Part shown: in pieces, positions 41,806-63,862 of the stretch
Position numbering within the stretch: position 1 is the stretch's first letter
Layout of the letters: each line of letters begins with the position of its first letter
Made by a program: the position numbers and the translations under genes
Assembly (NCBI RefSeq): GCF_020745735.1
Contig: NC_083444.1
Location: 7,384,338-7,448,337 of the forward strand
Length of the DNA stretch: 64,000 bases
Direction: 5' to 3'
Origin: Hemiscyllium ocellatum
Taxonomy: Eukaryota
The notes under the pieces: generated by a model
What the model saw: only the letters and a program-made list of their open reading frames with translations
What the model was told of the DNA's origin: nothing
The model's database searches: none

Positions 41806-42070
41806 GGTGAGGGGGGGAGCCAAGGTGTTAGGGGAGAGGGGTGGAGGGGAGGGTGAGAGAACACAAAGGGGGAGCGCCCAATCGGGAGTCGAACAGACCC
41901 ATTCGGCAGCGACAAAGAAAGGCCTACTTCAGGCCAGCAGGGTCAAGGCCTGTCTCTTCCTCCAGTAGGCCTCAGCACCCTGTGAGGCAAGAGGAAAGGG
42001 GATTGAAGGTGGGAGGAGGGGAGGAGGGGGAATGGGGAGGGGGTGGAAGTCAAGGAGGGGGGGTGGACAT

Positions 42071-42220
42071 CTAGCGAGAGTCTGGCTGGAACCGCACGGC
42101 AGCGTACACAACGTCTCCACCCCCTCGCGGGGCCGTGCTCCCGTTCTTCAGGCCTTTTATTCCTGCTCCTTTTCCGACCTGCACAGAGGCGTAGACCAGG
42201 CCTTCCGGGTGGGCGAGCTG
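42071..42220 (-). CDS. PILR/Siglec-like receptor, last exon with two ITIMs
   Basis: Long AG-free pyrimidine tract ending in CAG|CAG at 42221; encodes QLAHPEG-LVYASV-QVGK...GD-VVYAAV-RFQPDSR*; both hexamers fit the ITIM consensus. Confidence 0.8.
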   Translation of the reverse strand, partial: QLAHPEGLVYASVQVGKGAGIKGLKNGSTAPRGGGDVVYAAVRFQPDSR

Positions 42221-42674
42221 CTGCGGGGAGGGGGGTGTGGGGAGTTGGGGATGTAGGGGTGGGGGTGTCCAGTTGAGGGGGGGGGAGGTGGTGGGAGAAG
42301 CAGAGAGAGAGAGAGAGAGAGAGAAAGAGGGGACAGGAGTTGAGAAAGGGGTTGCGGAGGGAGCAATCCCATTGTGAGTTTCCACCGACCCGCACCCCAA
42401 CTTCCACCCCTTGGGTGGGGGTCCGGAGGTGGGACACAAGAGGCAGGATGGGCGAGTCATCAGGTCATATTTGGCCAACTCATGCCCCCTAACCCCCTTC
42501 CCCCTCCCCTCAGATATTGAGGATCAGAAGGCGGGGAGGGGGAGTGGTCACCTTGAATCTGCGTCTCCTGTAGCAACCTGGTCGTCGTCATGGCGACCTG
42601 TTACCACGTGTTAAACAAAAAAGGGCTGAAAAATAGGCCATTCAGCCCCTCAAGCCTGCCCTGCATCCCCCCAA

Positions 42675-43160
42675 ATACACACACACATACAGACATGTGC
42701 ACACGCGCACACACACACACACACACAGGCATACGCACACGCTCGCACACACACACAGGCATGCACAGAGACATGCACATACACAGTTACATCCACACAC
42801 GTGCACATGCACAGACATGCACTTACACACACACGCACAGACATGCACGCACACGCTCGCACACACACACACAAACATGCACACAGACACGCACATACAC
42901 TGGCGCATCCACACATGTGCACATGCACACATAGGCATGCACACATACAGACACGCGCGCACACACAGAGGCATGCACACATACAGACATGCGTGCACAC
43001 GCTTGCACACACACACAAACATGCACACAGACACGCACACACACAGGCACATCCACACACGTGCACATGCACAGACATGCACACACAGAGACATGCACAC
43101 ATGCAGACAGGCGCGCACACACAGATGTGCGCATGCACATATGCACACGCACACACCCAC
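42675..43160. repeat. Compound (CA)n/(CATG) microsatellite
   Basis: Visible; source of the His/Thr and Cys/Val ORFs. Confidence 0.92.
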
Positions 43161-43917
43161 ACCCCTGGTTCCCTCTAAGCCCCGCCAGTCGTGTTCCCCA
43201 AGACAATGGGCAAATCCTCGGGCTTGGTCCCACCTGGTGGGGTTTCCAGGCCAACCCGAGGAGGAGAAGGTTCTGGAACATTGTTGGGTGGGTGAGGTAG
43301 CGCGAGGGAAGACAAAAGCGCCTTGCCCTGATCCTGAGAAAAATAACTTGTAAGGTGGAAACGACGGGCTGACTGAACCCTTCATGGGTCGTCCTGAGGT
43401 TGGGGAAGGTGCTACGAAATGAAGGCCTCGATGCCGCGTTGATGATTCCGTTTGGGTACGTTCGGTGGGGGAGGGAGAGCGAAGGGAGGCTGGTTGATAT
43501 AATCAGTGGCTGGACAAGGAGGGAGAAGGGGGGGCCAGCTGTCACCCAGTGGGAGGCAGCAGTTCCACAGCTCCATGGGATCTAGCTGTGCACCGCTAGG
43601 CCCCGGTCTGTCCGAAATGCCAGAATTCCTGGAGGACAACAAGGCAAAAAGAAAAGACTACGGAATTGGGATATGAAAAAGAGGCATGGGAAGATTCCAC
43701 CATTCCCGTCGCTTGGCAGCGATCTTAGCGGCTGAACTTTGACCTCACTCCCATATTGTCGGTGGAGCAGGCTTAGGGTGTGGGGATGGCCCACCTGCTC
43801 CTATTTCCAACGTTATCCCGTCAGATTCCCGAGGGTGCTGTGAGGAAGTGTCCTCCCCCACCCACACCCCCTTGCCATTTCCCGGGTTTGCCACCTCCAT
43901 CCACCTCTGGGTCTTAC

Positions 43918-43961
43918 CTCACCAGTGGCCACTGTCTCAGGTTGGCATGGGGCACCAGGAT
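43918..43961 (-). CDS. PILR/Siglec-like receptor, probable cytoplasmic exon
   Basis: ctttcag acceptor and GTAAGA donor; 44 nt, phase 1 to 0 (DPGAPCQPETVATGE); joins the TM exon in frame to the ITIM exon. Confidence 0.55.
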
Positions 43962-44360
43962 CTGAAAGATACAAAGCAGATGGCAAAGCACTCAGGGGGC
44001 ACTCTCTCGTGTTTGTGTGCGATTCCCCACCATCTCCACCGGCGAAACTACAACACCCACCCCTCCTGAGCACCCACCCCTCTCAGTTCTAGCCACTGCC
44101 CCCTTCGTGACCTGGACTCCCGCCCCTCTGGATTTTCCAGCCTGGTCGCTCAGTGACACCCCCTGCGTCCCACCTCCCCGCCCCGAGCGCTTTACTACAC
44201 CGTGGTGAGACACCATTGCCTTAGGTTTTCCAGGAGCTACGTAAATGCAACTTGTTGTTGTAGTCTGGGATTGCCAACCCTTGCTTGGTTGCTGCTCCAG
44301 GATAAATTGTCTCCCCCACCTGCCCCCATCGGAAGGTATTGACAATGCCATTGGGATAGG

Positions 44361-45316
44361 GGATGGTGTGGTGGCTCAGTGGTTAGCACTGCTGCCTCAC
44401 AGCGCCAGGGAGACGAGTTCAATTCCATCCTCGGGTGACTGACCATGTGGAGTTTGCACATTCCCCCCCCACCCCCCTCCCCGTGTCTGCATGGGTTTCC
44501 TCACAAAGTCCAGGTTAGGGTGGATTGGCCATGCTAATTTGTCCCATAGTGCCCAGGGATGTGCAGGTTAGGGTGGATTGGCCGTGCTAAATTGTCCCAT
44601 AGTGCCCAGGAATGTGCAGGTTAGGGTGGATTGGCCATGCTAAATTGTCCCATAGTGCCCAGGGATGTGCAGGTTACGGTGGATTGGCCATGCTAAATTG
44701 TCCCATAGTGCCCAGGGATGTGCAGGTTAGGGTGGATTGGCCGTGCTAAATTGTCCCATCGTGCCCAGGGATGTGTAAGTTAGGGTGGATTGGCCGTGCT
44801 AAATTGTCCCATAGTGCCCAGGGATGTGCAGGTTAGGGTGGATTGGCCATGCTAAATTGTCCCATAGTGCCCCAGGGATGTGCAGGTTAGGGCGGATTGA
44901 CCATGCTAAATTGTCCCATAGTGCCCCAGGGATGTGCAGGTTAGGGTGGATTGGCCATGCTAAATTGTCCCATAGTGCCACGGGATGTGCAGGTTAGGGT
45001 GGATTGGCTGTGCTAAATTGTCCCATAGTGCCCAGGGATGTGCAGGTTAGGGTGGATTGGCCGTGCTAAATTGTCCCTTAGTGCCCCGGGATGTGCAGGT
45101 TAGGGTGGATTGGCCATGCTAAATTGTCCCATAGTGCCCAGGGATGTGCAGGTTAGGGTGGATTGTCCGTGCTAAATTGTCCCATAGTGCCCCGGGATGT
45201 GCAGGGTTACAGGGACAGGGTAGGGGGGGATATAGATCTGGGTGGGATGTTATTCAGGGTGTGGGTGTGGACTTGCTGGGCCGAATGGCCTGCTTCCAAA
45301 CTCTAGGGATTTGATG
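44361..45316 (+). mobile_element. V-SINE with 53-bp array (~44515-45205, about 13 units)
   Basis: Period 53 bp (tggattg at 44521 and 44574); SINE head and tail flank the array. Confidence 0.92.
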
Positions 45317-45709
45317 AAATTTCTCCTCATCCCGGTCCTATCCCATCTCGTTGAGAACGTAACCTATTGGGAACACGCCTCCTGCCTGGCCTGTCCCATC
45401 ACGATATGAAGGGCTCCCAGTCGCTTCCCCTTGAACCCGTTCATATCAAATAAACAGCGAATGCCAAACGGCAAGTCGAATTGATGAAACATCGTGCCTG
45501 GGACAGGGCAAAACGCAGGCACCGGATGGGGTTAGTGAGCTGGCTCGCTCACTCTATTGACTTTTCCACCCATATGTCCCATTATCCTTTACACAGAGTT
45601 CGAGACAGTAAGAGGAGGCACACATGGAGCAGAGAATTGTGTGCGCAACAGAGTCGTTTGACTCCTCCAGCCTGTACAGCCCAAAATACACTCCTACCTC
45701 AGTGATGGA

Positions 45710-45976
45710 ATCCCCGCAGTGTGGAAACAGGCCCATACCAACCCTCCAAAGATTAACCCACCCAGACCCTACCCTGTTTACCCCTGACTAATGCACCTAA
45801 CCTACACGTCCCTGAGCGCTATGGACAATTTGGAATGGCCAGTTCACCCTAACCTGCATATTTTGGATTGTGGGAGGAAATCAGGCAGACACAGGGAGAA
45901 CATCCACACCAACAGTCAACCCTGAGGCTGGAATCAAACCCAGGTCTCCGGTGCTGTGAGACAGGAGTGCTTACTG
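45710..45976 (-). mobile_element. V-SINE, degenerate
   Basis: Reverse complement of the SINE. Confidence 0.75.
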
Positions 45977-46259
45977 TCGGATCACCATGCTCCCAGCTTC
46001 CTGGGCCAGTGTTGATGACACCAACCACCAATGTGAAGACACTACAAGTGCTTTTTAATGGCTGTTATGATTCCTATCCCAATCACTACATTCCAGAGAT
46101 TCCCCATCACCCAACTGGGAGTTAACCTGTTCCTCAAATCCCCTCGAAACCTCCACATTTTCATTTGAAACTGATAAAGCCCCTTGATTATAGGGAACAC
46201 TTCCTTCCCATCTACCCTCAGAATCTTACACACCTACTGAACCCCATAGCCAAGGTTAG

Positions 46260-46580
46260 ACCAGGGAGGGGAGAGGCAACAGAGGAGGGGAGAGAGGAGG
46301 CAACAGAGAGGGGGAGGGGGGGCAACAGGGAGGGAGAGAGAGGGCGCAACAGGGAGGGGGAAAGGCGGGTGACTCAACAGGGAGGGGGAAGGAGGGGCAA
46401 TGGAGGGGGGAAGGAGTGTTACTGGGGAAATGGAGGGACTGAGATGGGGAGGGTAGAGCAACAGGGAGAGGGAGGGAGGGTCTGAGATGGGGAAGGAGGG
46501 GTAACAGGGAGAGGGAGGGGCAATGGATGGAGGATGAAGTGGGGACAGAGGTAGGGTGCAAGGGGCATTAGAGAGAGGGA
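46260..46580. repeat. Purine-rich low-complexity repeat (ggagggggcaacagg-like)
   Basis: Strong G/A strand bias. Confidence 0.8.
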
Positions 46581-47619
46581 GGGGTAAACAGGAGAGGGAT
46601 CTCTCAGGATCCTTCCTCACACCCCCCCCCCACCCTCTTCTATTCCAAGAAAGAAAATCCCAGTCCAAGTTTATCCAGCCTCTCTCCATCAGTGAACTGC
46701 CCCGTCCCAGGGCAACATCCCAATGGATCTCCTCTGCACTCCCCCCCACCCTCCTTCAGGCCCCTTCCCCCTCCAGTGCAATCCCACCCTTCCGATGGTG
46801 TAGGGATCTGGAACAGAGCACCGTATCCCAGGGTCAAGGTTAGACCAGAGAAGGTAATGCGTTCACCCCCACCCTCCCCTCCCCCAAACTGGCCCATACC
46901 TTCCTGGGATTGATCCACGTCCTTCACTGGGGAGCCGTTTAGACCTCGATCGCTGCAGGGGTAGGGGGAGAGAGAGCAGAGAAAGGTGGGAGATATACCC
47001 GCCATTCTGAACACAAACAGGCCATTCGGCCCCTCAACCCTCCGATGATATTGCGGTGGATCCATTCCCAGTCGGCAACCCCCTTCCCTGATAACGTTTT
47101 CACCCCTGTCCATAGGAGCGCCATACCCATTAACACACGGCACGTCGCTATGGCCGGGAAAAGACATCTCTTCATCTTGTCCTCTTCAGGACCTTTCACA
47201 AGAATCACCAAACGTAGGCAGCCATTCAGTGCCGGTAGAGTTTCGTTTATAATTATTCAGGGGCATCACAGAATAGTGACCAGCCCGGAGGGCGAATAAG
47301 AGGCAACCGCACTGCTGTGGGTCTGGAGTCACATGTAGGCCAGACCAGGTAACAGATTTTCTTCACCCCACTTTCTCACAATCAATAATGCTTTCATGGT
47401 TATCAATTCATTCTTTTTTCCAGATAATTGTTGGATTCGATTCCCGTGAGCGGGATTTGAACCCAGGTCCCTGGAACGTTTGCTTGGCATTAACCACGAG
47501 GCTGTCAGCTGCCCCCAATGCTTGGTGCGTCAGTCGGTGGCTGATTGTACTCGACAGCACATTCCCATTGGCTAGCCTCAACAGGGTAGCTAGTGACCCT
47601 CCTCAGATGGTCCTCACTT

Positions 47620-48320
47620 ACCCCGGGGGGGGTACGTGAGGGTCGGGGGCAGGGTGAGTGGCAGGGCGGAGGGAGTGAAGGAGGTAGGGTGGCATGTAGG
47701 TGGGTGAGGGGGCAGGGTGGGTGGTGGTAGAGATGGGGCAGGTGGTAGGAGGATCTCCAGGGTAGAAGGGCAAGCAGGCTGGCAAACTGGGGGCTAAAGG
47801 GGCAACAGGGAAGGGGAAGGAGGGGGAAGGAGGGAAAGGCAACAGAAGGGGAAGGAGGAGCAACCGGGAAGGGGAAGGAGGGGCAACAGGGAGAAACAAT
47901 GAAAGGGGAAGGGTGGCAACAGGTAAGGGGAAGGAGGGGCAATGGAAGGGGAAGGGAGGGGCAACAGGGAAAGGGAAGGAGGGGCAATGGAGGGGAAGGG
48001 AGGGGCAATGGAGAAGGGCAAGGGTGCAACAGAGGGAGGAGGAGAGGCCATGGAGAGTGGGAAAGGAGAGGCAATGGGGGTAAGGAGAGGCAACAGAAAG
48101 GGGGAAGGAGGGACAATGGGGGAAGGGAAGGGCAGCACAGAGGGAGAAGGAAGGGCAAAGGGGCATTGGAGGGGCAGCAGAGAGGAGAAAGGGGGAGAAG
48201 AGATAGAAAGCGGCGGGGGGAGCGAGTGGCAGAGATAAGAAAGATGAGGGAGGGGCAACAGGGAGGAGAGATGGGCATCTGTTAAGATGGCAGGAGGGTG
48301 AGGGGGTCCATGTCGAAGGT
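47620..48320. repeat. Purine-rich low-complexity repeat (ggggaaggaggggcaa-like)
   Basis: Strong G/A strand bias; gives the Pro/Leu/Ser-rich spurious ORFs. Confidence 0.85.
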
Positions 48321-48688
48321 GAGGTGGGCAGGGCACTGGGGCATCGGGTGTTGAAAGGGGTATGTATCAGAGTTTGGGGGTATATCAGTGTGAGTGATTT
48401 GGGGAGTTGTTGGGGGGGAAGAGGGGTCGGGGGAATTAACTTTAGTTTCAGCCTTTGTGATTGGGGGAGCTCTGATTTAACCTTGAATCTCCCCTTTGGG
48501 ATGGGGTGAGGGGGGGAAGTGTAGGGTGGGGATGGCCCACAAGAGCCAATCAGAAACCTATAACGTCCCTGTCTTGAGCTCTGGAGTCCTGGGGAGGGTG
48601 GAGGGCACTCTCAGAAGGTTCTGGAAGTGGGGTATTGTCCAGATGGAGATTTCAGAGCGGCTCTGGGGACATGTGGGAAGGGTACGTG

Positions 48689-50079
48689 CAGCATGGTGGC
48701 TCAGTGGTTAGCACTGTTGCCTCACAGCGCCAGGGAGCTAGGTTTGATTCCACCCTTGGACGACTGTCCGTGTGGAGATTGCACATTCTCCCTGTGTCTG
48801 CGTGAGTTTTCTCCCACAATCCAAAGTTGTACAGGTTAGGGTGGATTAACCGTGCTACATTGTCCCATAGTGCCAAGGAATGTGCAGGTTAGGGTGGACT
48901 GGCCGTGCTAAATTGTTCCATAGTGTCCAGTGATGTGCAGGTTAGGGTGGATTGGCCGTGCTAAATTGTCTCACAGTGTCCAGGGATGTGCAGGTTAGGG
49001 TGGATTGGCCGTGCTAAATTGTCCCATAGTGTCCAGGGATGTGCAGGTTAGGGTGGATTGGCCATGCTACATTGTCCCATAGTGCCCAGGGATGTGTAGG
49101 TTAGGGTGGATTGGCCATGCTAAATTGTCCCATAGTGCCCAGGGATGTGCAGGTTAGAGTGGATTGGCCGTACTAAATTGTCCCATAGTGCCCAGGGATG
49201 TGCAGGTTAGGGTGGATTGGCCATGCTACATTGTCCCATAGTGCCCAGGGATGTGTAGGTTAGGGTGGATTGGCTGTGCTAAATTGTCCCATAGTGCCCA
49301 GGGATGTGCAGGTTAGAGTGGATTGGCTATACTAAATTGTCCCATAGTGCCCAGGGATGTGCAGGTTAGGGTGGATTGGCTGTGCTAACTTGTCCCATAG
49401 TGCCCAGGGCTGTGTGGGTTTGGGTGGATTGGCCGTGCTAAATTGTCCCATAGTGTCCAGTGATGTGCATGTTAGGGTGGATTGGCCGTGCTAAATTGTC
49501 CCATAGTGTCCAGTGATGTGCAGGTTAGGGTGGATTGGCCATGCTAAATTGTCCCATAGTGTCCAGGGATGTGCAGGTTAGGGTGGATCGGCCGTGCTAA
49601 ATCGTCCCATAGTGCCTAGGGATGTGCAGGTTAGGGTGGATTGGCCGTGCTATATTGTCCCATAGTGCCCAGGGATGTGTAGGTTAGGGTGGACTGGCTG
49701 TGTTAAATTGTCCCATAGTGCCCAGGGATGTGCAGGTTAGGGTAGATTGGCCGCGCTAAATTGTCCCATAGTGCCCAGGGATGTGCAGGTTAGGGTAGAT
49801 TGGCCGCGCTAAATTGTCCCATAGTGCCCAGGGATGTGCAGGTTAGGGTGGATTGACCGTGCTAAATTGTCCCATAGTGCCCAGGGATGTGTAGGTTAGG
49901 GTAGATCGGCCGTGCTAAATTGTCCCATAGTGTCCAGGGATGTGTAGGTTAGCTGCGTTCATCAGGGTAAATGTAGAGTGATAGGGTAGGGGACTGGGTC
50001 TGGGTGGGTTACTCTTCGCAGGGTCAGTGTAGACTTGTTTGGCCGAAGGGCCTGTTTCCGCATTGTGGGGATCCTATGG
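48689..50079 (+). mobile_element. V-SINE with 53-bp array (~48830-49950, about 21 units)
   Basis: Longest array copy; head and tail intact. Confidence 0.92.
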
Positions 50080-50469
50080 TACATGTGGTGTGTGAGGATT
50101 GGGAGATAGGATGTTCTCCTGTCGATAATGCAGCCTGGGTTATGGTAGATTACATGGGCTATCCCCAGGAATACAGCAAGCTGTTCCGTTCTATGACTAA
50201 TGCTCCAGGAAGGCACTGTGTGGTCCCCATCTAATACCGTGTCAGAGTCAGTCACATGTATTGATGGTTGGTACTTACATGTCCATGCTCCCTTTCCTGA
50301 TATTACCTGCACAGACAGGGAGATAAACAAGGAGTAAGCACAGAGACCATTGTCACCATGGAGACTAGGACTGACGGGATTTGACACCCTGTGCAGTTTG
50401 CAGACAGCCCATTAGTAGAAGGAGAATATTTTTAACTTCGTGTTGACAAAAATGAGATGTGGGTGCCGC

Positions 50470-51830
50470 AACATTTATTGCTCGTCCCTAATTGCCCCTC
50501 GAGACAGTTGCCTTCTTGAACCGTTGCAGTCCCATGTAGCGTAGGGACACCCACACAGCACCATTAGGGAGAGATTCGCAGGAGACCCAGCGACACTGAA
50601 GGAACGGCCGATATATTCTCAAGTTGGGATGGGGAGTGGCTTGGAGGGGAACTTGCAGGGGGATGGTGTTCCCATGTATTGGCTGCCCTTGTCCTTATTG
50701 ATGGAATTGGTCATGGGTTTGGAAGATGGTCTCGAAGGATCTTGGGTGAATTGCTGCAGTATATCTTGTAGACGGTACATACTGAGCGTCGGTGAGGTAG
50801 GGAAGGGATGTTTGTGAATGAGGTGCCAGTCAAGTGGGGGCTACTTTGTCCTGGATGTGTCAAGCTTCTCAAGTGCTGTAGGAGTTGCCCCCATCCAGGG
50901 CAAGTGGGGAGTATTCCATCACACTCCTGAATTGTGCCTTGTCGATGGTGGACAGGCTTTGGGGAGTCAGGAGGTGAGTTACTCACTGCAGTATTCCTAG
51001 TCTCTGACCTACTCTTGTAGCCACTGTGTTTCTATGGTGAATCCAGCTGAGTTTCTAGTCAATGGTAACCCCCAGGATATTGATAGTGGGGGGATTCAGA
51101 GATAGTAACACCATTGAATGTCATGGGGCGGTGGTGAGATTGTCTGTTATCGTCATAGCCTGGCATTTGCGTGGCATGATGTTAGATGCCACTTGTCAGC
51201 CCAAGCTTGGATATTGTCCAGATCTTGTTGCATTTGGACACAGACTGCTTCAGTATCTGGGGAGTGGCGAATGGTGCTGAACATTGTGCAATTATCGGTG
51301 AACATCCCACTTCTGATCTTATAGTGGAGGTAAGGGCATTGATGAAGCAGCTGAAGATGGTTGGGCCTAGGACACTACCCTGAGGGACTCCTGCAGAGAT
51401 GTCCTGGAGCTGAGATGACTGACCTCCAACAACCACGAACATCTTCCTACGTGTCAGGGATGAGTCTAACCAGTGGAGTGTTTGCTCCCTGCTACCCATG
51501 GGCTCCAGTTTTGCCAGGGCTCCTTGAAGCCACACTCACTCGATTGCAGCCTTGATGTCAAAGGCTGTCACTCTCACCTCCCCTCTGGAAGCTAGCTTCT
51601 TTGTTTATGTTTGACCCAGGGCTGTAATGAGGGCAGGAACTGAGTGGCCCTGGAGGAACCCAAACTGGGCATCACTGAGCAGGTTATTGCTGAGTGGGTG
51701 CTGTTTTGCTGATGACACTTTACTGATGATCGCGAGGCGACTGATGGGGCAGCAATTAGCCAGGTTGGATCTGTCCTGTTTTTTATGTCCAGGACATATC
51801 AAGGGAAGGGTCACTGGCTCGAAAGGTTAA
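50470..51830 (-). mobile_element. Second LINE family (CR1/L2-group), RT and 3' end
   Basis: ORF 51182-51535 has [20 protein letters not shown]; 3' part matches 17050-17885. Confidence 0.8.
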
Positions 51831-52059
51831 CTGTGTTTTTTTCTCTACAGATCTTGTTAGGTGCTGAAGATTTTCTTTGGCAATTTCTCTTATTGCTAGA
51901 ACTTTCCATATTGTCAGGTAGATGCCAATGTGACAACTGCATGTCTCAATCGTTGCTTTGGCCAAATCATGCTGCCTGCCATCTTGGTTGCTTACATTGG
52001 TGGTAAACTTCTGGCTGCCTCAGTATGGGCGAGCACAGCAATACCCACACTTTGATTCG

Positions 52060-52620
52060 CGTTGTTGCCCCTCTGGTAGACAGGGTAGTGAAGAAGCTTA
52101 CCTTTATTGGTCAGTGAATTGAGTACAGGAGTTGGGAGGTCATGTTGTGGCTGTACAGGACATTGGTTTGGCCAATTTTGCAATATTACGTTCAGTTCTG
52201 GTCTCCCTACTATAGGAAGGATGTTGTGAAACTTTGAAAGGGTTCAGAAAAGATTTACAAGGATGTTGCTGGGGCTGGAGGGTTTGAATTATAGGGAGAT
52301 GTTGGATAGGCTGGGGCTGTTTAGCTTAGAGTGTTGGAGGCTGAGGGGTGACCTTATAGAGGTTTATAAAATCATGAGGGTCAAGGATAGGGTAAATAGA
52401 CAAGGCCTTTTTCCCCAGGGTGGGGAAGTCCAAAACTAGAGACCAAAAGGTTTAAGATGAGAGGGGTAAGATTTAAAAGGAACCAGGGGGGCAAATGTTT
52501 CACACAGAGGGTGGTGCACATATGGAATTGACTGCCAGAGGAAGTGGTGGAGACTGGTACAATTACAACATTTAAAAGGCATCTGGATGAGTATATGAAT
52601 AGGAAGGGTTGAGAGGGATA
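52060..52620 (+). mobile_element. CR1 3' fragment
   Basis: Same RT C-terminal sequence as other copies. Confidence 0.85.
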
Positions 52621-53254
52621 GGTGACAATACCAATTGAGACCTGCCCTACCTCTCCCTCTGTGCTCCTCAGTGCCCCGCCAACTTCAGCGTAGGCAGTGG
52701 GCAATGATGGCAAAAGATTTCTCTGAGGTAACGGGTGCCCCTATGACCGGTGCCAATTGGTTGGTACACGGGCACCACTGACGTAGAGAAACGGGCACAG
52801 TAATAAAACTAGGCTGGTCAAACTCTGGGAGTGTGCGATGGCACAGGGGAGTGGAAATCCAGCCAATCACAGTGTAGCAAGTCACTCCAGGAGCCAAACC
52901 TGGTGGGATCTCCGTTGGGCCCCCGAAACCCGACGGATTCACATCTCGGGGTTTAAAAAGAGTGAAAAAAATCCCGCCCTCGAGGGGGAAGGGGTCCCTG
53001 CCATCCCTTTACCCGGTCTGGGCAGCACACGTGACTCCAGACCCGTGGCGACGGAGGTTGACGCTTGAGCTGCATTCTGGGAAAGAAGGGTCGCTCTGCG
53101 AGAAGGGAAGGGGGTGCTTCTGTGGAGACAGGAGGAGAATGCCACCTTCATGAGGGCAACTGGGTACTCGTTGGCACCCCATAAGTGACGCCCGGGTCCC
53201 TTGGAGGAAGTGGCCCATGGCGAGGGGTGTGGGTACTGGGGATGGACTCCTTAC

Positions 53255-53470
53255 CTCGCTGCTGACGTTTCTTCTTGCGGACGTATACAGTAGCTGCTAT
53301 CGCCATGATAGCAATGAGCACTATCACTACACACGCAGTCGCTACAATCCAGGCCAGCTTCTGACGTTTTCCCGTGTTTGTTACCATGGTTCTGGAAGTA
53401 GTGAGTTGCCATGTTGAAACCGTGGTGGGGTTGACTGTGGATTTGGAAGGAATTGGTTGTTGCGTTGAAG
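53255..53470 (-). CDS. PILR/Siglec-like receptor, mucin-like stalk + transmembrane exon
   Basis: ctctctag acceptor (53471), GTAAGG donor (53254), phase 1-1; STQQPIPSKSTVNPTTVSTWQLTTSRTMVTNTGKRQK-LAWIVATACVVIVLIAIMAIAATVYV-RKKKRQQR; uncharged TM followed by a basic stop-transfer run. Confidence 0.88.
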
Positions 53471-53662
53471 CTAGAGAGAAAGAGAGAGAGGACCACTTTC
53501 ATGAAAGTAAGATCGGCGCCACACAAATTCCAGGCAATGGCTATCTCCAACAACTGCTTGACATTCAGTGGTGTTATCGAGGCTGAATCCCCAATCCCCT
53601 CCCACACGATCAACATCCTGGGTAGTGGGGTGGGGGGTTACCATTGACTAGAAACTGAACTG

Positions 53663-53869
53663 AGAGAAAGTGAGGACTGCAGACACTGGAGATCAGAGTT
53701 AAAAAGGGAAAGGACAGGGGGTCAGGCAGCATCTGAGGAGCAGGAGAATCGATGTTTCAGGCATTAGCCCTTCATCAGGAATGTGATAAAGGGGCTAATG
53801 CCTGAAACATCGATTCTCTTGCTCCTCGGATGCTGCCCGACCTGCTGTGCTTTACCAACACCACATGTT
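53663..53869. mobile_element. Palindromic Penelope-like tail insert with 19-bp target-site duplication
   Basis: ttgactagaaactgaactg at 53644-53662 and 53870-53888; the inverted arms meet at the hammerhead core (~53780). Confidence 0.85.
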
Positions 53870-53904
53870 TTGACTAGAAACTGAACTGGAAGATTAAAAC
53901 CCAC

Positions 53905-54000
53905 CACTCCGGTAATTATACATGGTTGTGGAAGTAGTGGGTTGCCATGTTGAAACCGTGGTGGCTTTGACAGTGGATTTGGAAGGAATTAGTTGTTGCA
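53905..54000 (-). CDS. PILR/Siglec-like receptor, duplicated mucin-like stalk exon
   Basis: tttcag acceptor, GTGGGT donor, 96 nt phase 1-1; QQLIPSKSTVKATTVSTWQPTTSTTMYNYRS is paralogous to the start of the 53255-53470 exon. Confidence 0.72.
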
Positions 54001-54059
54001 CTGAAATGAATTCTGATGAACAATCAACTTGACTCGAAACGTTAGCTTGCTCTCTCTCC

Positions 54060-57000
54060 TGGAAAAATGCCTTATAGGTCTTTCTATCTTCTCATCATCT
54101 TCCTGTAAGAGCACAGCACCAACACCAACATCATTTGCATCAATAGCCAACATGAATTGGCTTTACGTAGTTAGATATGGCTAACATTGGGGCGGTGATT
54201 AATAAAGCTCTCAAACTGTATTCAATTAAACTTCCTACTTTTACTAAGGAACTCGGTGAGTGAAGCAGCCACACTACTAAATTTGATTCGAATTTCCAAT
54301 AAAATCTAGTCAATCCCAGGAATCATAGTACTGCTCTCTTGATTGATGGTATGGAAAACTCCCCAATAACCTTTGGTTTTATGTTCTGTGGGGCCATTTG
54401 TTGATGTTCGATAACATGGCCTCGGAAGGTGACTTGGGCTTTGGCAAGTTCACTCATGGCCAGGTTTATCACCAAGTCTGCCCCCGCGAAGCCAGTTGAA
54501 CAATTCTGATAAATATTGCAAATCTTCCTTCCATGTGTGACAAAAAAAATCACCAGGTCATCAATTGGGTAATCCAGAAATGACCAGGTTGGTTAGTCTT
54601 TGAAATGTGGCTAGCACATTTTTCACACTAAATGACATGACTTTAAATTGATACAGTCCATTTGGCAGAACGAAAGGCAAAATTGTCTTCACTCTTTCGA
54701 ATAAAGGTACCTGCAGTATCCTCTGAGTAAGTCCAACTTAGAAATAGAAGTTGCTTGCCCCACCTTTTCAATACAGTCTTCCAAATGTGAAATCAGATAT
54801 GAATCAGACTTTGTAACTGCATTGACTTTGTGATAGCCCACACATCACCATTGGGTATCATCCAGTTTTGGCACCATTATTATGGGTGAGCTCCAGACAC
54901 TGTAACTCACTTTGATTATGTTGTCTTGGGGCATGAGTTCCATCTCTTTTTGAACCTCTGTCAACTTTAAAGAGTTAAGTCCATAAAGACGTTGCTTAAT
55001 CGAAACAGAATTTCATATATCAATATCATGCATAAGTGGGTTAGTACTTCCTGGCTTATTTCGACATATCTCTCCAGGTAATAGCCATAACTCTTTTGGG
55101 TCATTTCAAATTTTCCAATGGAAGGTAATTCAATAATTTATCCCAATTTTTGACAACTTTCTTATTATCTAATTTAATTGGAGGAATGTCTAATTCAGAG
55201 TCCTCTTAGTTCTTCCCTCTGTGTTGTAACCAGTAGCTCAGCCTCCTTTTGCTTTCCTCCCCTGTCAAAATATCTGTTGAGTGTATTCACATGACACACT
55301 CTGTGAGATTTCTTTCTGCGTCGAGTCCTGATCAAATAGTCCACCTCACTCAATCTCCTTTTGACTTGATAACATCTACTTAACTATGCTTTTAAATGTT
55401 CACCTGTCTCTGGTAGTACCACTGGCACTTTATCTCCAACAGCAAAAATTGCGAGTTTTTAATTTCGTGTCTGCTTCCTGTTTCGGCATATGCTGTGATA
55501 TTTTTAAATGCTGTTGAGCCAGCTCCCTCACTTTATTTAGCTGTTCTTGAAAATTTGACTCAGAGACCAAACATATGGTGGCTGAATTCTGACTCACCAA
55601 TTTAATGGTCCACTCATGCCAAAATAAAATTAATTCAAATGTTCTGCATTTGGCCGATTCATTTGGTGCATCTCTGATGGCAAAAAGCACAAATGGAATT
55701 CCTCTATCCCCATCATCTGGATAGTCTTGACTAGAAGCCCGCAACATGGTCTTTAATGTCTGATGCTCCCTTTCTAGTGCTCCGGATGTTCACAGTGGAT
55801 TTGAATTGTTTTGTTGCTAAGCTGTCCATAGATTCCTTGAATAGTTTTGATGTAAAGTTTGACTTTTGACTGGATTGATATCATGTAAATAATTTGAGTA
55901 ACTCTGAGTATGTATTGGATTGGCCTCTGAAAATCGAGTGGACGTATCCATTATTGTTAACAAATACTGATTCCCACTTTTTGTTTTAAGTAGGGGTCCT
56001 GTGAAATCAATTAGGATGCTTGTAAATCATTCCTCAAATGCCGGAATAGGTATTAAAGATGACTGCGTTTTTCCAGTTACCTGACGTATATGACATGTCT
56101 GGCAAAAGAGTGCTTTAGGAAACATCTCCGGGACAACCGCACCAATCAACCCCACCGCCCCATGACCAAACATTTGAACTCCCCCTCCCACTCTGCCAAG
56201 GACATGCAGGTCCTGGGCCTCCTCCACTGCTGCTCCCTCACCATTCAACGCCTAGAGGAAGAATGTCTCATCTTCTGCCTTGGAACCCTTCAACCCCAGG
56301 GCATCAATGTAGACTTCACCAGTTTCCTCATTTCCCCTCCCCTCACCTTACCCCAGTTCCAACCTTCCAGCTCAGCACCATCCTCATGACCTGTCCTACC
56401 TGCCAATCTTCCGTGCCACCTACCCGCTCCACCCTCCTCTCCGACCGATCACCTTCATCCCCACCCCCATCCACCTATTGCACTCTTAGCTACCTTCTCC
56501 CCAGCCCCAATTCACCCCCCTCCCATTTACCTCTCCATCCCGGACACTGCCTGCCTCATTCCTGATGGAGGGCTTTTGCCCGAAACGTAGATTTTCCTGC
56601 TCCTCGGATGCTGCCTGACCTGCTGTGCTTTTCCAGCACCACTCTAATCTTGACTCTAATCACCAGTCCTCACTTTCACCAAATATACAACTACATCCTT
56701 GAGCTGTTCAGGCCAGTAAAAATGTTTTTATATTTTAGCTTGAGTTTTTCCTACCCCTAAATGACCTCCTACTGGCAATTTATGCACGACCCACAACACC
56801 ACCTCTCTATAACCCACTGGCAATACGACGTGATGAATCTCTGCCCATTTCCCATCTGCCTGAATACGTGATGGTCTCCATTTCCCTCAGTAAGGCATAA
56901 TTTTTATGATAGTTGCACACTGGGATACATCTACAGTCTTCGTCCAAGTATGCTTTTTGATACAATCACTTCAGTTTTTTGTCTTTCTCTGAGCTAAAGA

Positions 57001-58902
57001 TATCCACGTCGTCCTCCACCTGTTCCTGTTTCATCTCATCTATCTGATCAACCAGGGTCTCTGATAATTCGACTTCAACTTTCTTATCTGTATTCTTTGA
57101 TTTCTCCTCTTGTTCCAACTGGTGACTTTGTGACCTCGTTACCATACAAGCAGAACAAGTCCCAGGATACTCTCCCTGTACCATCTCAGTTGCCTGATTT
57201 TCCACTGGCTTTTCAACCACATTAGGCAGCACTCCCACTATGACCCAGCTATATCATTAGCAAGGACAAATTATATTCCAGGATTTGAGAGTTTTTCCAA
57301 TCCTGCCACCATGACTTATTCCACTCTTTACTGTAACCTCACTCTACACAATTGAACACTTTATGTCTCTCCGTGAGTTCCACGTATTAGCACTCTTTCT
57401 GGTAATCATCCTTTTGAGTTACATATCTCCTCAGCTCTCAACATCAAAGATTGACATGATCCCATATCTCTTAATACTGTAACCTCTTTGCCTGCTGCTC
57501 CTGGTCTATGCGAGTGAGACTTACCATTGCACATAAATGGTTTAAGAAGATGTAGCACTTCCTCCTTACCCAATCTCTGACCAGGTTGTACATTCTGATG
57601 CAGCTTTCTTGCCTCCACTGTCCTTTCTGTTAACACACCAACAGAATTCACTGGCTTCTCCTGTTTCCTACATCTGGCTTTTCCAGACCCACTAACACTG
57701 TGATTTCACACGGCAGTGAAAACACCGGAGCTTTTTAACTTCTCTTTCCCCTTTCATGGGTTTCCTTTTGACCCTGTGGTAAGTTATCCCGATGATCTTC
57801 AGTGAGATCTACCTTTCCCTTTCCACATGAGGATTCCTCTTTGCCCCAGTTTCTATCTCTCACGGATTCAAATTGATGTTGGAAGCCAAACTTTGATTTA
57901 TGAACCAACTCATAACCATCAGCCATTTCAGCTGCTAATCTTAGTGTCTTCACTCTCTGCTCTTCCACAGGAGTTCTCACTACCACAGGAAGCGAATTTT
58001 TGAAATCTTCCAAGGTAATTGTCTCTCTAAGAGCATCATAGGTTCCCTCCATTTTTAATGCCCTTCTCCACTGCTCAAAATTACTTTGTTTGATCCTTTC
58101 AAACTCAATATAGGTTTGACCAGGGTCCGCCCTTAGATTCTTAAAACATTGTCTGTCAGTTTCTGGCACAAGTCCATATGCACTTAAGCTGGTTTTCTTC
58201 ACCACCTCATATCCCCAGGTACCTCCTCTGATAGGGATGTGAATACCTCAGGAACTCTACCTCCCAGCTTTGTTTGGATTGACAAAACCCACATGGGCAC
58301 TGGCCACTGCATTTGTTTAGCCACCTCCTCAAATGAGATGAAAAAGGCTTCTACATCCTTCTCATCAAATTGAGGCAACGCTTGGACGCATTGAAACAGG
58401 TCCCCACCAGGCCTTCTGCTCCCAGGGGTTTGCTCATCCTCACTCTCTCCCTCCCTGAGCTTACCTTTTCCTTTCAAGCTGATTTTCCTGGCTAAGTGCC
58501 AATTCAAAACGTTCAATTTCCCTCTCTTTCTTCTCTCCCTTTCTCTCTTTCCTCTCACTATTTATCCTTTGGTTCTGCTCGGGTGATGCGTTCGTTTTCT
58601 CTTAATTCAAACTAGTCTATTTCCAATCATATTGCATTTCTATTTCTCTTCTTTTGCCTTTTGCCAGTAACTCAAGCTGCTTCATGTTCAATTGGACTTT
58701 AGCCATTTCCAAAGATGCTGATGGCATTTCCAGCAAATTTGAAATGCTGAGCCGTTGCTGTAATGTTCTCTCCTTTTCTCATGGATGAAGGCAACTCCAA
58801 CTTGCCTACCAATCCCAGAAGCTTTTCCTCGTTCACCTTTTGTAAAGGTCCCAAAGTCACCTCTTCCACCCCCAAAAAACTCCTAGCGACTGAAAGAGCC
58901 AT
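54060..58902 (-). mobile_element. Decayed Gmr1-like Ty3/gypsy LTR retrotransposon internal region (gag with SCAN-like domain, PR, IN, RT, partial RH)
   Basis: In transcript order: gag 58902-57700 (PETDRQCF...W...LEDFKNSLP), protease LRDMGSCQSL ~57460, integrase GHLG..KT...FYWP...CQTC ~56780-56080 and IDFTGPL ~56005, RT LDLLRGY ~54725 and IDDLVIF ~54560, RH remnant ~54100-54250; many stops and frameshifts. Confidence 0.82.
56108..56680 (+). mobile_element. Penelope-like 3' fragment inserted in the gypsy integrase zinc finger
   Basis: CFRKHLRD.RTNQPHRPMTKHLNSPSHSAKDMQVLG plus tail; the flanks rejoin as KDVVVY-FCQTCH. Confidence 0.85.
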
Positions 58903-59339
58903 TCCTCCCCCAAGCAGGGTTTAAACCAACCGCATTCAACACCCGGAACAAAAGACAATAACACCTACCACTTGCTGCCTTTGAGTCCAACCACCCTAAT
59001 CCCAAATTGGAACTATCAAATAAATCCTGACAAGAGTTTTCAATCTGTTATGGACCAGGCCAGACCTCCTCAAAACACTTTAGGAACGGAACCCAGACCT
59101 GAACTTTATCATATTTTAAAGGTAGATGTGCCGTGGATAGTCCAGGTGTGATGCAGCTGATCATACCACCCAGCTTGAAGCAAAATAGAATTTATTGAAG
59201 CAATAAATAAACAAAAGAATTTACAATAACTGCACTATTTGAAAACCCAACTGACTTAACGAAGGAGCCTTTCCAATTCCCACAACATCCCAAGAATACT
59301 CATTCAGAAAGTAAGGAGGCTTGGGATACAGGGAACCTG

Positions 59340-60370
59340 TCTGTCTGGATACAGAAGTGCCTGGAGCTCGGTGACCAGTGGTGTGACGCAGGGATCGGTT
59401 CTGGGACCTCTGCTCTTTGTGATTTTTATAAATGACTTGGATGGGGAAGTGGAAGGGTGGGTTAGTAAGTTTGATATGAAGGTTGGTGGAGTTGTGATAG
59501 TGGGGAGTGCTGTTGTAGGTTGCAATAGGCAGCACAGTGGTTCAGTGGTGAGCACTGCTGCCTCACAGCGCCAGGGGACCTCGGGCGACTGTCTGTGTGG
59601 TGTGTGCACATTCTCCTGTGTCTGTGTGGGTTTCCTCCCACAATCCAAAGATGTGCAGGTTAGGTGAATTGTCCATGCTAAATTGTCTTTGTGCTCAGGG
59701 ATGTGCAGGTTAGGTGGATTAGGCAAATATAGGATAGGGGAATAAATCTAGATGGGTTAGTCTTTGATCAGTGAGGATTTGTTGGGCTGAAGGGCTTGTT
59801 TCCACAGGGTAGGGATTCTAATTCAACGGGACATTGACAGGATGCAGAGTTGGGCTGAGAAGTGGCAGATGGAGCTCAACTTGGAAAAGTGTGAAGGGAT
59901 TCACCTTGGAAGGTCAAATTTGGATGCAGAGTACAGGGTTAAAGGCTGAATTCTTGGCAGAGAGCAGAGGGATTCTAGGTCCATGCCCATAGATTCCTCA
60001 AATTTGCCATCAAGTTGATCAGGTTGTTAAGAAGGTGTAAGGTGTGTTGGCTTTCAGTAGCAGGGGATTGAGTTTAAGAGCCACAAGGTTATGCTGTAGC
60101 TCGATGGAGCCCTGGTTAGACCACTCTTGGAATATTGTGTTCAGTTCTGGCCGCCTCATTATATAAAAGATGTGGAAGCTTTAGAGAGGGTGCAGAGGAG
60201 ATTTACTAGGACTGGACTGGAGGGCATGTCTTATGAGGAAAGGTTGAGGGAGCCAGGGCTTTTCTCATTGGAGAGAAGAAGGATGAGAGGTGACTTGCTG
60301 GAGGAGTGTACAAAATGTTGAGAGGCATAAGTAGAGTGGATAGCCAGAGACTTTTTTCCAAAGCAGGAAT
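59340..60370 (+). mobile_element. CR1 RT fragment interrupted by a V-SINE (~59529-59820)
   Basis: [22 protein letters not shown] before the SINE; [11 protein letters not shown] after it. Confidence 0.85.
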
Positions 60371-60574
60371 GTCTGGAGTGGGCTACTTTAAACAAGGGCA
60401 GGCAACTCTGCCTTTACGATCCCCCCCCCGCCCCGAAAAAAAAAAGGACAAAAGAACCTTGTTAAAGGGGCAGCAATGTCACAAGTGGTTCAAGAAGGCA
60501 GCTCACCACCACCTTCTCAAGGGGCAATTAGGGATGAGCAATAAATGCTGGGCCAGTCAGCAACATCCATGTCC

Positions 60575-61190
60575 CCAGGGTCAATGTAAATACATATTGC
60601 TGGATGGCAGCAAACACCACATCGGACAGACAGGCAGCAAACTAGCCACCAAGATACACGGACATCAGCTGGTCACCAAAAGGCATGACCCACTGTCACT
60701 AGTATCCTGACATACGGATGGAGAAGGACACCATTTCGACTGGGACAACACATCCAGCCTGGGACAGGCTAAACAGAGACATGCACGGGAATTCCTAAAT
60801 GCCTGGCATTCAAACTGGAATTCTATCAATAAACACATCGACTTGGACTCCATTTATCAACCTCTGAGAATAAGGACCGGAAATGATATCATCCAACTTA
60901 AAGGGACCAAGACACAGAAAGCTGAACAGAACACCAGTGCTTCGCAGGAAGCTCACCGATGATGTCCGATGAAGGGCTCCGGCCCAAAACATCGATCCTC
61001 CTGCTCCTCGGATGCTGCCTGACCTGCTGTGCTTTTCCAGCCAACACACTCTCAACTCTGATCTCCAGCATCTGCAGACCTCACTGGCTCCTCACTGATG
61101 ATGTTCCCGAGCATGGTGACGAACCGTCTGGGAACAAGCCTTCCAGCTCAGTGAGCAAACTTACAACCCAAACCTCACCCTGAGCTACAA
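60575..61190 (+). mobile_element. Second Penelope-like family, GIY-YIG 3' end, with a family-1 tail inserted (60966-61090)
   Basis: HIGQTGSKLATKIHGHQLVTKRHD...FDWDNT...AREFLNAWHS; own degenerate hammerhead caCTGATGAtgtt...gacGAAccGTCtg at ~61093-61130. Confidence 0.75.
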
Positions 61191-62479
61191 ATCTTCTCAG
61201 AAATCACAAATGTGTATTTAATGAAAAATTACTGTCCTCCCTGTCCACTTGTTCATTGTCGGGTATACCAGACCCTCTGGAAAAGGCTGAGACTTATTCC
61301 TGGGAAGATATCATCTCAAACTGCCAGCAGACATTCCAGAGGGTCACTCAGACATTGGCCATGTTGATGTGGGACGGGAGTCACCTATAGACCCCGACTA
61401 GTCAGTGCATGGAGGGTTCAAATACAAACAGGGACTGAGTTGGATGATCCGCCATGATCCCATTGAACAGCAGAGGAGGCCTGAGGGACCGAATGGCCTA
61501 ACTTGTGCTCCTAACCCTCACCTTCACCCTGACCCTACCCGATATTTCTCCGTTTGGGGTGAAAGAAAGAGTTAACGTTTCCAGTCTGACGCAACTCTCC
61601 TTTGGAATTTGTGTTGTGAAATTGGAACGGAAATGTTAAACTCTCTCTCTCTCTCCGCAGACCTGCTGAGTTTTTCCATTGCCTTGCCATTTTTATTTCA
61701 GATTCCCCGTGAAAGGACAGGAGGTTGAGAAGGGAGCAACAATCCGACTGTGTCCCGATCACCCTTTTCCCGATCACGATTCCCAGGTGAAGGTGGCACT
61801 GGCTAGGCCCCTCCCTAATTGCCCGGGGGGGGGGGCTGTTGAGAGCCAACCACATGGCTGTGGGTCTGGAGTCATGTGTAGGCCAGACTGGGTAAGGATG
61901 GCAGTTTCCTTCCGGGATGGACATTAGTTTTCTGACAATTCGATTCATTGCCAACAGGGGACTATTAATTCCAGATTTCTTTTTAAAAATTGGAATTCAA
62001 GTTCCACTTTCTGCTCTGGGTGGATTATGAAGCCAGGTCCCCTGGAATATTACCTGGGTCTCTCTGGGTCTGGCAACAACACCACTCGGCCACCACATTC
62101 TCCCTCCAGGGGCTATTCTTGTAAACACCCTCTGCGTTTTCTCAGTAATGTGGCACGCACAGCAGGTCACCAGACTTCCTCTGAGGTTTTGTGACACGTG
62201 AAAACAAAACCACGAATAGTTTCTTGGTTCGGTGGAGCCATTGCATGGCTCCCATGTTGCAGCTTCAACCATTGAGGTGACACCGAGGGCCAGGACACAG
62301 GGCAGTTGATGGAGGGAAGGGTCTAGGGGTTGGCAGTCGAATGTTATTTCTGGAGGAGAGTTGGGGGTGGGGGGAGATGTGGGGAATGCATTGGCTGATC
62401 CGGTGGTCTGATTTCTTAATGTGCTTTGATGTTCACCCTTCCCTCACCAAATTACCATTCCACAATGTCCATTTGGTGT

Positions 62480-63410
62480 AGGGGTTGGAGGAGGTGACAG
62501 AGATAGAGACGAGTGTAGGGCTACAGGAGGTGACTGTGGTAGGGAGGGATATAGGGGCTGGAGGAGGTGACAGAGATAAGAGGGGTGGAAAGGCTGGAGG
62601 AGGTGACAGAGACAGGGAAGGGTATAGGGGCTGGAGGAGGTTACAGAGATAGGGAGGGATGTAGGAGCTGGAGGGGGTTACAGAGATAGGGAGGGGGTGT
62701 AGGGGCTGGAGGGGGTTACAGAGATTGGGAGTGGGTGTAGGGGCTGGAGGGGGTTACAGAGATAGGGAGCAGATGTAGGGGCTGGAGGAGGTTAGAGCGA
62801 TAGGGAGGGATGTAGAGGATGGAGGAGGTTACAGAAATAGAGAAAGGTACCAGGGCTGGAGGGGGTTACAGAGATATAGGGAGGGATGTCAGGACTGGAG
62901 GAAGTGACAGAGATAAGGAGGGGTGTAGGGGGTTACAGAGATAGGGAGGGATGTAGGGGATGGAGGAGGTTACAGAGATAGGGAGAGGTGCCTGGGCTGG
63001 AGAGGGTTACAGAGATAGCGAGGGGGTAGCGGGGATGGAGGGGGTTAGAGAGATAGGGAGGGGGTGGAGGTGCTGGAGGGTGTTACAGAGATAGGGAGGG
63101 TGTGGAGGGGCTGGAGGGGGTGACAGAGATAGGGAGGAGTGTAGGGACTGGAGGAAGTGACAGAGATAGGGAGGGGGTGGCGGGGCTGGAGGGGGTGACA
63201 AATATAGGGAGGGGATGTAGGGGCTGGAGGGGGTGACAGAGATTGGGAGAGGTGCCAGGGCTGAAGGGGGTGACAGAGATAGGGAGGGGGTGTAGGGGCT
63301 GGAGGGGGTTACAGAGATAGGGAGGGGGTGTCAGGGCTTGAGGGGGTTACAGAGATAGGGAGGGGGTGTTGGAGCTGGAGGAGGTGACGGAGTTAGGGAA
63401 GGGTGAGGGA
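62480..63410. repeat. G-rich ~37-bp minisatellite, roughly 24 units
   Basis: Unit gggctggagggggttacagagatagggaggggtgtag. Confidence 0.92.
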
Positions 63411-63493
63411 GAGTTAGGAGATGAATACTAAACCTGAGGCAATGCAGGGGGTATCATACACAAAGTAATACTGAGACTTTAAAGCAGTATTAC

Positions 63494-63862
63494 CTCGGAC
63501 AGTCAGGTAGGTCCCTGGGATGCTTTGCCAGACTGCATAACGATTTCCTGTTATCGCCACCCGACAGAAATAACGGTTTGTATCCCTTGTTCTCAGCTGC
63601 TTTATCCGGATGGTCCCTGTCCTCTCCTTGGCCGGATCTCCCAGGAATTGAATTCGCCCTCGGTATTCAGGGTGAGTGTATCCCAGAGACATATTGAAGA
63701 TAAATTCCCCGTGAAACTCGTTTCTTCTCCAGGTAATGTCATACCGTGTGGGTGTGTGTGTATCTGGGTAAGTGAATGTACACGGGATGTCGACCCATCC
63801 CCCTTCCACACCCTCCAGTCGACCCGGTTGGTTCACTGTGAAACCATCTCCATGGATCATCC
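63494..63862 (-). CDS. PILR/Siglec-15-like receptor, V-set Ig domain exon
   Basis: ctccctcag acceptor (63863), GTAATA donor (63493), 369 nt phase 1-1; IPCTFTYP...ITWRRNEFHGE...GTIRIKQL...DTNRYFCRV...WQSIPGTYLTV has B-strand Cys, C-strand Trp and the D-x-x-x-Y-F-C-R motif. Confidence 0.92.

Follow-up and report, generated by a model that had tools for sequence, protein, structure and literature searches.

A probable inhibitory PILR gene of the shark Hemiscyllium ocellatum, its activating neighbour and its likeness to Siglec-15

The gene at 42071-63862

The window analysed here is a stretch of 64,000 nucleotides from the genome of the epaulette shark, Hemiscyllium ocellatum (contig NC_083444.1, forward strand). 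Its minus strand carries, between positions 42071 and 63862, what we consider with a probability of roughly 0.85 to be an inhibitory (alpha-type) paired-receptor gene of the PILR family, present in the window except for its first exon. An earlier note, made from the letters of the sequence, had described the region as a receptor combining features of PILR and Siglec-15. The features it claimed (the V exon, the arginine codon at 63561-63563, the end of the gene) were all found in place on this strand. It named the V-set exon, the stalk, the transmembrane segment and the immunoreceptor tyrosine-based inhibitory motifs (ITIMs) but omitted three small cytoplasmic exons, which are needed because the reading phases connect only with them. 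The gene has the following parts:

63494..63862, minus strand: V-set immunoglobulin exon of 122 full codons, phase 1/1, acceptor ...CCCTCAG, donor GTAATA
53255..53470, minus strand: exon for the stalk, the transmembrane segment and the stop-transfer sequence KKKRQQR, phase 1/1
50279..50306, minus strand: cytoplasmic exon 1 (GNIRKGSMD..), splice sites AG/GTAAGT
46900..46952, minus strand: cytoplasmic exon 2 (IDRGLNGSPVKDVDQSQE)
43918..43961, minus strand: cytoplasmic exon 3 (DPGAPCQPETVATGE)
42071..42220, minus strand: last coding exon, with LVYASV at 42182-42199, VVYAAV at 42095-42112 and the stop codon TAG at 42071-42073
41700..42070, minus strand: 3' untranslated region, minimum extent, present with the last coding exon in the RNA-like runs X1 and X2

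The six exons are all open; they are bounded by AG acceptors and GT donors, and their phases fit one another. Spliced with the acceptor at 42217, they translate exactly to residues 16-299 of a database protein, P0162, which is named H. ocellatum PILR beta isoform X2, and the RefSeq model joins the exons identically. The gene is already modelled in RefSeq under a PILR name and is, as a gene, ordinary. From the gene layout, the signal peptide (the first 15 residues) is encoded by an exon about 4.75 kb past the end of the window. The last coding exon is preceded by a tandem CAG/CAG acceptor (42217-42222); because this offers two splice points, at 42220 and at 42217, isoforms of 300 and 299 residues occur. 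The same pair of isoforms, one residue apart, is found in Chiloscyllium punctatum (293 and 294 residues).

Two sequencing runs from the same sample as the DNA runs of the assembly, X1 (253 million letters) and X2 (150 million letters), are guessed to be RNA. At 41700-42260 the share of sampled words present was 0.95 in X1 and 0.93 in X2, where about 0.93-0.94 would be expected if everything downstream of the 42220 acceptor is transcribed. At 53100-53650 the shares were 0.32 and 0.30, and the DNA runs gave 0.70-0.96; the transmembrane exon makes up 39% of this stretch, and about 0.36 of the 31-letter words fall entirely inside it. The shares are those expected of spliced RNA, though no proof that the exons are joined on one molecule.

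The product is a type I membrane protein with a V-set domain, a mucin-like stalk, a transmembrane helix and an ITIM-bearing tail. Pfam returned a V-set domain (E 5.4e-11) as the sole domain above threshold. No C2-set exon is present in the product, and the V exon is followed directly by the stalk and transmembrane exon. Only two cysteines occur in the V domain, Cys27 (63780-63782) and Cys99 (63564-63566), the second of which is immediately followed by Arg100 (codon 63561-63563). Its CC' loop reads W44-R45-R46..F49-H50-G51, its G strand W111-Q112-S-I, and it contains a single N-glycan site (N56-M-S). Ser and Thr account for 15 of the 39 residues of the stalk. The transmembrane segment, WIVATACVVIVLIAIMAIAATVYV, has zero charged residues, and LVYASV and VVYAAV both match the ITIM pattern [SIVL]xYxx[IVL]. 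The layout of PILR-alpha that had been proposed for this protein (a single V-set domain, a stalk rich in Ser and Thr, an uncharged transmembrane segment and two ITIMs) is seen in exons and translation alike. Because the transmembrane segment is uncharged and the tail carries two ITIMs, the window gene is of the alpha type, and the "beta" of its RefSeq name is a naming slip.

Family membership and the ligand clamp

The V domain is, by sequence and predicted fold, a member of the PILR family. Against PDB sequences its best single-domain match is PILRB (65.0 bits, E 9.3e-17), followed by PILRA (64.2 and 63.7 bits). Siglec-15 reaches 40.1 bits (E 4.5e-9), while pIgR domain 1, NKp30, sialoadhesin, MAG and other Siglecs lie at 23-31 bits. 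A profile of 53 V domains of the clade matches human PILRA with 158 bits (E 8e-46) and sialoadhesin, Siglec-15 and pIgR domain 1 with 44.4, 44 and 43.7 bits. On these profile scores the description of the domain as a hybrid of PILR and Siglec-15 was not borne out; it is a plain PILR member.

The fold was compared using an AlphaFold model made with the 53-sequence alignment, for which the predicted local distance difference test (pLDDT) was 93.8; a single-sequence fold (pLDDT 44) was discarded. The six best PDB fold matches are all PILRA or PILRB, with template modelling (TM) scores of 0.85-0.87, root-mean-square deviations of 1.6-2.1 and 32-35% identity. The five best matches among Swiss-Prot models are likewise all PILRA or PILRB, and together with those from PDB they span TM scores of 0.85-0.88 and 32-42% identity. 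The next PDB matches are Siglec-15 (TM score 0.80, 29% identity), sialoadhesin (0.83) and MAG (0.83), and the Swiss-Prot models follow in the same order. CD300, TREM and pIgR do not appear among the 50 best structural matches, and for that reason a clustering with non-lectin V-set families is not seen. Sequence scores and fold matches agree on a grouping with lectin-type V domains (PILR, Siglec-15, sialoadhesin, MAG), as opposed to one with CD300, TREM and pIgR.

An exhaustive protein search found 570 relatives, and those that have names go under PILR alpha or beta in many species. Further searches, with the V region and with an alignment of 28 full-length sequences, brought up PILR-named proteins almost exclusively. 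Among sharks, PILR-named relatives occur in Chiloscyllium, Stegostoma, Rhincodon, Carcharodon, Cetorhinus and Scyliorhinus, and one in Heterodontus is named pIgR-like. Among skates and rays they occur in Amblyraja, Leucoraja, Rhinoraja, Narcine, Pristis and Mobula, and elsewhere in the chimaera Callorhinchus, caecilians, turtles and mammals; a tuatara relative is unnamed. The statement that PILRs are best characterised in mammals is right for experiments. It is not right for catalogues, as RefSeq holds PILR-named proteins of many sharks and rays, a chimaera, caecilians and turtles. In the literature searched we found no paper treating the PILRs of cartilaginous fish.

In a tree of 141 V domains (a quick search, midpoint-rooted, with weak deep forks) those of cartilaginous fish form one clade with support of 98. 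This clade falls in a polytomy with the clades of mammals (98), of turtles (98) and of caecilians and with a group of amphibian proteins that have multiple V domains. Relatives from lampreys and generic V-set domains lie outside the group of cartilaginous fish and tetrapods. Two outlying families, P0036 and P0068, were considered as Siglec-15-like outgroups and rejected, as their PDB matches are those of generic V-set domains like pIgR or JAML.

Some relatives have more than one V domain. Four lamprey proteins (P0011, P0020, P0222, P0223) have three V domains of PILR type each, for which the PILR profile gives 64-90 bits. A protein from a lungfish (P0013) has seven weaker ones. The lamprey and lungfish proteins lie outside the PILR clade of jawed vertebrates. 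By these sequences the V-domain type may be older than the jawed vertebrates. In Heterodontus francisci, five models named "polymeric immunoglobulin receptor-like" (P0001, P0151-P0154) consist of three near-identical units of a PILR V domain and an activating-type transmembrane segment, head to tail. In these models the gene predictor seems to have fused tandem PILR genes.

In human PILRA the essential R126 contacts sialic acid through a salt bridge and is held in position by Q140; the ligand is not bound without F76 and R72, and G78 is conserved outside humans (PMC6235402). We numbered human PILRA as chain index + 30, which was checked by W59, F76, G78 and the R78 variant of 4NFB. In the printed alignment the shark and human residues correspond as follows:

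Shark W44-R45-R46: human PILRA W71-R72-R73
Shark F49-H50-G51: human PILRA F76-H77-G78
Shark Cys99-Arg100: human PILRA C125-R126
Shark W111-Q112: human PILRA W139-Q140

As aligned, the shark V domain keeps all of the alignable residues of the human clamp (R72, F76, G78, R126, W139, Q140). The likeness to PILRA recognised by eye in WRR..FHG and WQSI.GT proved to be a residue-for-residue match to the human protein. The clamp (R45, F49, G51, R100, W111, Q112 in shark numbering) is kept in all but one of the aligned members from sharks, skates and chimaera. The arginine after YFC had been equated with the sialic-acid arginine of both PILRs and Siglec-15, and it does align with PILRA R126 and, by position arithmetic, with Siglec-15 R143.

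The B strand differs between shark and human. As proposed earlier, the canonical pair of B-strand and F-strand cysteines is kept in the shark, and its B-strand member corresponds to Phe53 of human PILRA. This position is Cys in all aligned members from sharks, skates, rays, chimaera, caecilians, tuatara and turtles, and Phe in all mammals aligned. As judged from this alignment, the derived state is the mammalian loss of the B-strand cysteine, and there is no special shark state. Cys27 of the shark should form the canonical disulfide.

In the PILR-named proteins of turtles and in similar unnamed members (P0035, P0039, P0041-P0043, P0051, P0053, P0058, P0059, P0062, P0065, P0074) the F-strand arginine is replaced by Gln, His or Glu, and the WQ of the G strand by WR or WK. 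These PILRs may have lost the ability to bind sialic acid in the manner of PILRA. The site is evidently not fixed across the family, and W59 of the human clamp is without a counterpart in the shark. Both observations would suit a reading in which the shark protein has kept the PILR fold and the arginine but has a protein or another non-sialylated ligand. We regard this as unlikely, because the six clamp residues are near-universal in the aligned members from sharks, skates and chimaera and are kept in both partners of the H. ocellatum pair.

The activating partner and the rest of the window

The earlier note had suggested a search for a nearby activating paralogue with a charged transmembrane segment, and one was found. 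P0160, named PILR beta, is a protein of 206 residues encoded on the same contig and the same strand. Its gene is 12,772 bases long and lies upstream; 7,841 bases (7.8 kb) separate its end from the start of a gene for a V-set product of 300 residues, which matches the longer isoform of the window gene. The signal peptide of P0160 is identical to that of P0162, and its V domain differs from that of the window gene at 6 of 122 positions (95% identical), none of them a clamp residue. Its stalk is unrelated to that of the window gene, its tail is short and without ITIM, and its transmembrane segment, LILIIKAGFALTILVTVWLVGMCLM (LILIIKAGF..), carries a Lys. P0160 is the true beta-type gene of this shark. 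Within the window no second paralogue was found by tblastn with V, transmembrane and ITIM pieces; its sole yield was an incomplete copy of the stalk at 53924-54007.

Chiloscyllium, Rhincodon, Carcharodon, Cetorhinus and Scyliorhinus also have activating forms, whose transmembrane segment is homologous and bears a Lys or Arg in the corresponding position. Because they recur across five genera, both gene types are old. The V domains tell a different story, as in five species the inhibitory and activating V domains pair by species in the tree and not by type. A constraint that unites the activating V domains in a single clade, a group defined only after the tree had been inspected, costs 302 log-likelihood units and is rejected by the approximately unbiased (AU) test (p 3e-62). 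V domains are 86-98% identical within a species, as against 69-83% for the same type between species. Since the V domains group by species and are more alike within species, the leader and V exons have probably undergone gene conversion repeatedly, and we infer that conversion keeps the V exons of the partners alike. Duplication and conversion at the mammalian PILR locus were reportedly described by Wilson and colleagues in 2006, to judge from the title of their paper as cited in the review PMC13358205.

Several other features were found in the window:

53924..54007, minus strand: partial second stalk copy, 28 codons, 79% identical to the working stalk
53989..58558, minus strand: decayed long terminal repeat (LTR) retroelement remnant in the 10-kb intron between the V and stalk exons
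29862-33519, plus strand: LINE-like element, with a GDSL-esterase open reading frame (ORF; E 6e-15) and, after it, an ORF for an apurinic-type endonuclease (Exo_endo_phos, E 6e-22)

The partial stalk copy has an acceptor-like TTTCAG, no transmembrane part and no in-phase donor, and it is unused in the RefSeq product. At several positions it is nearer to the Chiloscyllium stalk, and it abuts the retroelement remnant. It is probably a dead exon remnant. The LTR remnant contains a reverse transcriptase-RNase H piece (Pfam RT_RNaseH_2, E 6e-7) and a SCAN-like gag piece (E 5e-8), both outside the gene product. An ORF of 414 codons at 23031-24275 matches GIY-YIG weakly (E 3e-4), under the Pfam cut-off. 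No host genes were recognised in 1-41900. Runs of N occupy 2283-2482 (200 bases) and 13184-13403 (220 bases).

Likeness to Siglec-15, ancestry and meaning

In human Siglec-15 the canonical disulfide joins C64 and C142, and the residue right after C142 is the essential R143. A second bridge links C95 and C104, and the protein also has a C2-set domain and a transmembrane segment of positive charge that pairs with DAP12/DAP10 (PMC10264397). Numbering follows the construct starting at residue 20 (PMC10264397). The ungapped match of query 6-42 to chain 107-143 sets shark Cys99-Arg100 on C142-R143 of Siglec-15, and Cys27 falls on C64 provided that the single gap of the alignment lies beyond that position. 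The earlier note had likened PCTFT.P, LG.P and D..RYFCRV to Siglec-15, and as a whole the shark V domain does match it, with 40 bits; the PILR V domains of chimaera and caecilian score 33-34 bits. That of a rodent PILRA scores below 18 bits, which is the score of the last match among the matches listed. The simplest reading is that mammalian PILRs have diverged and lost the B-strand cysteine, and that non-mammalian PILRs are nearer to a generic siglec-type V domain. As to the marks of the Siglec family, the window gene has the F-strand arginine and no C2-set domain after the V domain. As to those of Siglec-15 itself, it does not have a charged transmembrane segment without ITIM, and it is not closer to Siglec-15 than to PILR.

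These likenesses could also be taken to mean that the shark domain is no ordinary PILR but an intermediate between PILR and Siglec-15, which preserves the state of a common sialic-acid-binding ancestor. Siglec-15 is its best non-PILR match by sequence and fold, the two cysteines and the arginine line up in both, and rodent PILRA fails to reach Siglec-15 among the matches listed. Nevertheless we think this improbable. By the family profile Siglec-15 is no nearer than sialoadhesin or pIgR domain 1, all three far from the score of PILRA, and in the chimaera protein pIgR domain 1 scores above Siglec-15 (40.7 versus 33.3 bits). Moreover, the Siglec-15-like traits are common to all of the non-mammalian PILRs examined, and the shark protein lacks the C2-set domain and the second, C'-C'' disulfide. 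A related proposal is that PILR and Siglec-15 descend from one sialic-acid-binding V-set gene that predates the split between cartilaginous and bony vertebrates, with the shark PILRs showing the ancestral B-F disulfide and arginine and the pairing being about 450 million years old; we offer this tentatively, as a possible but rather doubtful history.

A third alternative is that the window carries a wrongly joined gene model, or one without function, or else a V-set receptor that is no lectin and resembles pIgR, CD300 or TREM. This is largely refuted and most improbable: pIgR chains do lead the raw PDB list at 74 bits, but we rejected this top match because its score adds up five domain matches of 9-23 bits apiece, no chain of these families is among the 50 best structural matches, and the six exons are open and joined in matching phases at AG/GT sites into the exact RefSeq protein, with exon-sized shares in the RNA-like runs at both stretches tested.

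Some points weigh against our assignment of the window gene to the inhibitory PILRs and the biology that goes with it. In the literature searched we found no binding, signalling or expression experiment on any shark PILR. Human Y33 aligns with shark Phe7, and human W59 stands opposite a one-residue gap, so that the detail of the ligand may differ in the shark. With regard to synteny with the mammalian PILR locus at 7q22, the window outside the PILR gene holds transposon remnants only. The gene conversion was read from the protein sequences of the partners, the group for the AU test was chosen with the tree in view, and the RNA nature of X1 and X2 is, as stated, a guess.

With the window gene taken as an inhibitory PILR, its mode of action can be proposed by analogy with human and mouse PILR (PMC6235402, PMC13358205). 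The V domain would bind, on a mucin-like ligand, both a sialylated O-glycan and its peptide, with Arg100 forming a salt bridge to the carboxylate of the sialic acid and Phe49 closing over the peptide. Binding would lead, as in the biology of human and mouse PILR, to phosphorylation of the two ITIM tyrosines. These would then recruit phosphatases of the SHP-1/SHP-2 type, and the activation of myeloid or natural killer cells would be damped. The partner P0160 would read the same ligand and signal via a DAP12-type adaptor held by its membrane Lys, and gene conversion would keep both V exons alike.

Compared with known receptors, the protein shares with PILRA a single V-set domain of siglec-like fold (TM score 0.85-0.87, 32-42% identity), the motifs WRR..FHG, YFCRV and WQSI.GT, an R126-type arginine after the F-strand cysteine, an O-glycan-type stalk, an uncharged transmembrane segment, two ITIMs and an adjacent, near-identical activating partner. 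Unlike PILRA, it keeps Cys27 where the human protein has Phe53, its FG loop is two residues shorter, W59 has no counterpart and the tail outside the ITIMs is unrelated. PILRB (PDB 4NFC, 4NFD) is the best single PDB sequence match (65 bits) and lends the shark gene its RefSeq name, but it carries a Lys in the membrane and has a short tail that lacks an ITIM, whereas the window gene encodes an uncharged transmembrane segment and two ITIMs. Siglec-15 (PDB 7ZOZ) is the second-closest family (40 bits, TM score 0.80, 29% identity) and matches in the B-F disulfide and the arginine. Its ligand, sialyl-Tn-type O-glycans, is a further likeness, which for the shark PILR is a prediction. Siglec-15 differs in its C2-set domain, its C95-C104 disulfide, an extra C'' strand, a charged transmembrane segment for DAP12/DAP10 and the absence of an ITIM. 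Sialoadhesin and MAG share the siglec-type V fold (TM score 0.81-0.84) and the F-strand arginine, but they are 22-25% identical to the shark V domain, their cysteine pattern differs from its own and they have many C2-set domains.

In humans PILRA is a myeloid checkpoint, an entry co-receptor for herpes simplex virus and a risk gene for Alzheimer's disease. In the literature searched, its history is discussed only within mammals. The shark PILR gene is already catalogued. The receptor pair itself probably goes back to the earliest jawed vertebrates. The full inhibitory and activating pair is found across the sharks examined, and family members are found in skates, rays and chimaera. Almost every cartilaginous member retains the sialic-acid clamp, and the absence of the B-strand cysteine in mammals appears to be a later loss. 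The V exons of each shark lineage seem to be kept alike by conversion, as reported for mammalian PILR genes. If the common ancestry with Siglec-15 were true, the pairing of inhibitory and activating receptors with converted V exons would be about 450 million years old and not a mammalian invention. The V domain of shark PILR would offer a natural disulfide-stabilised domain for structural and glycan-binding work, and the shark protein an outgroup for the relationship between PILR and Siglec-15.

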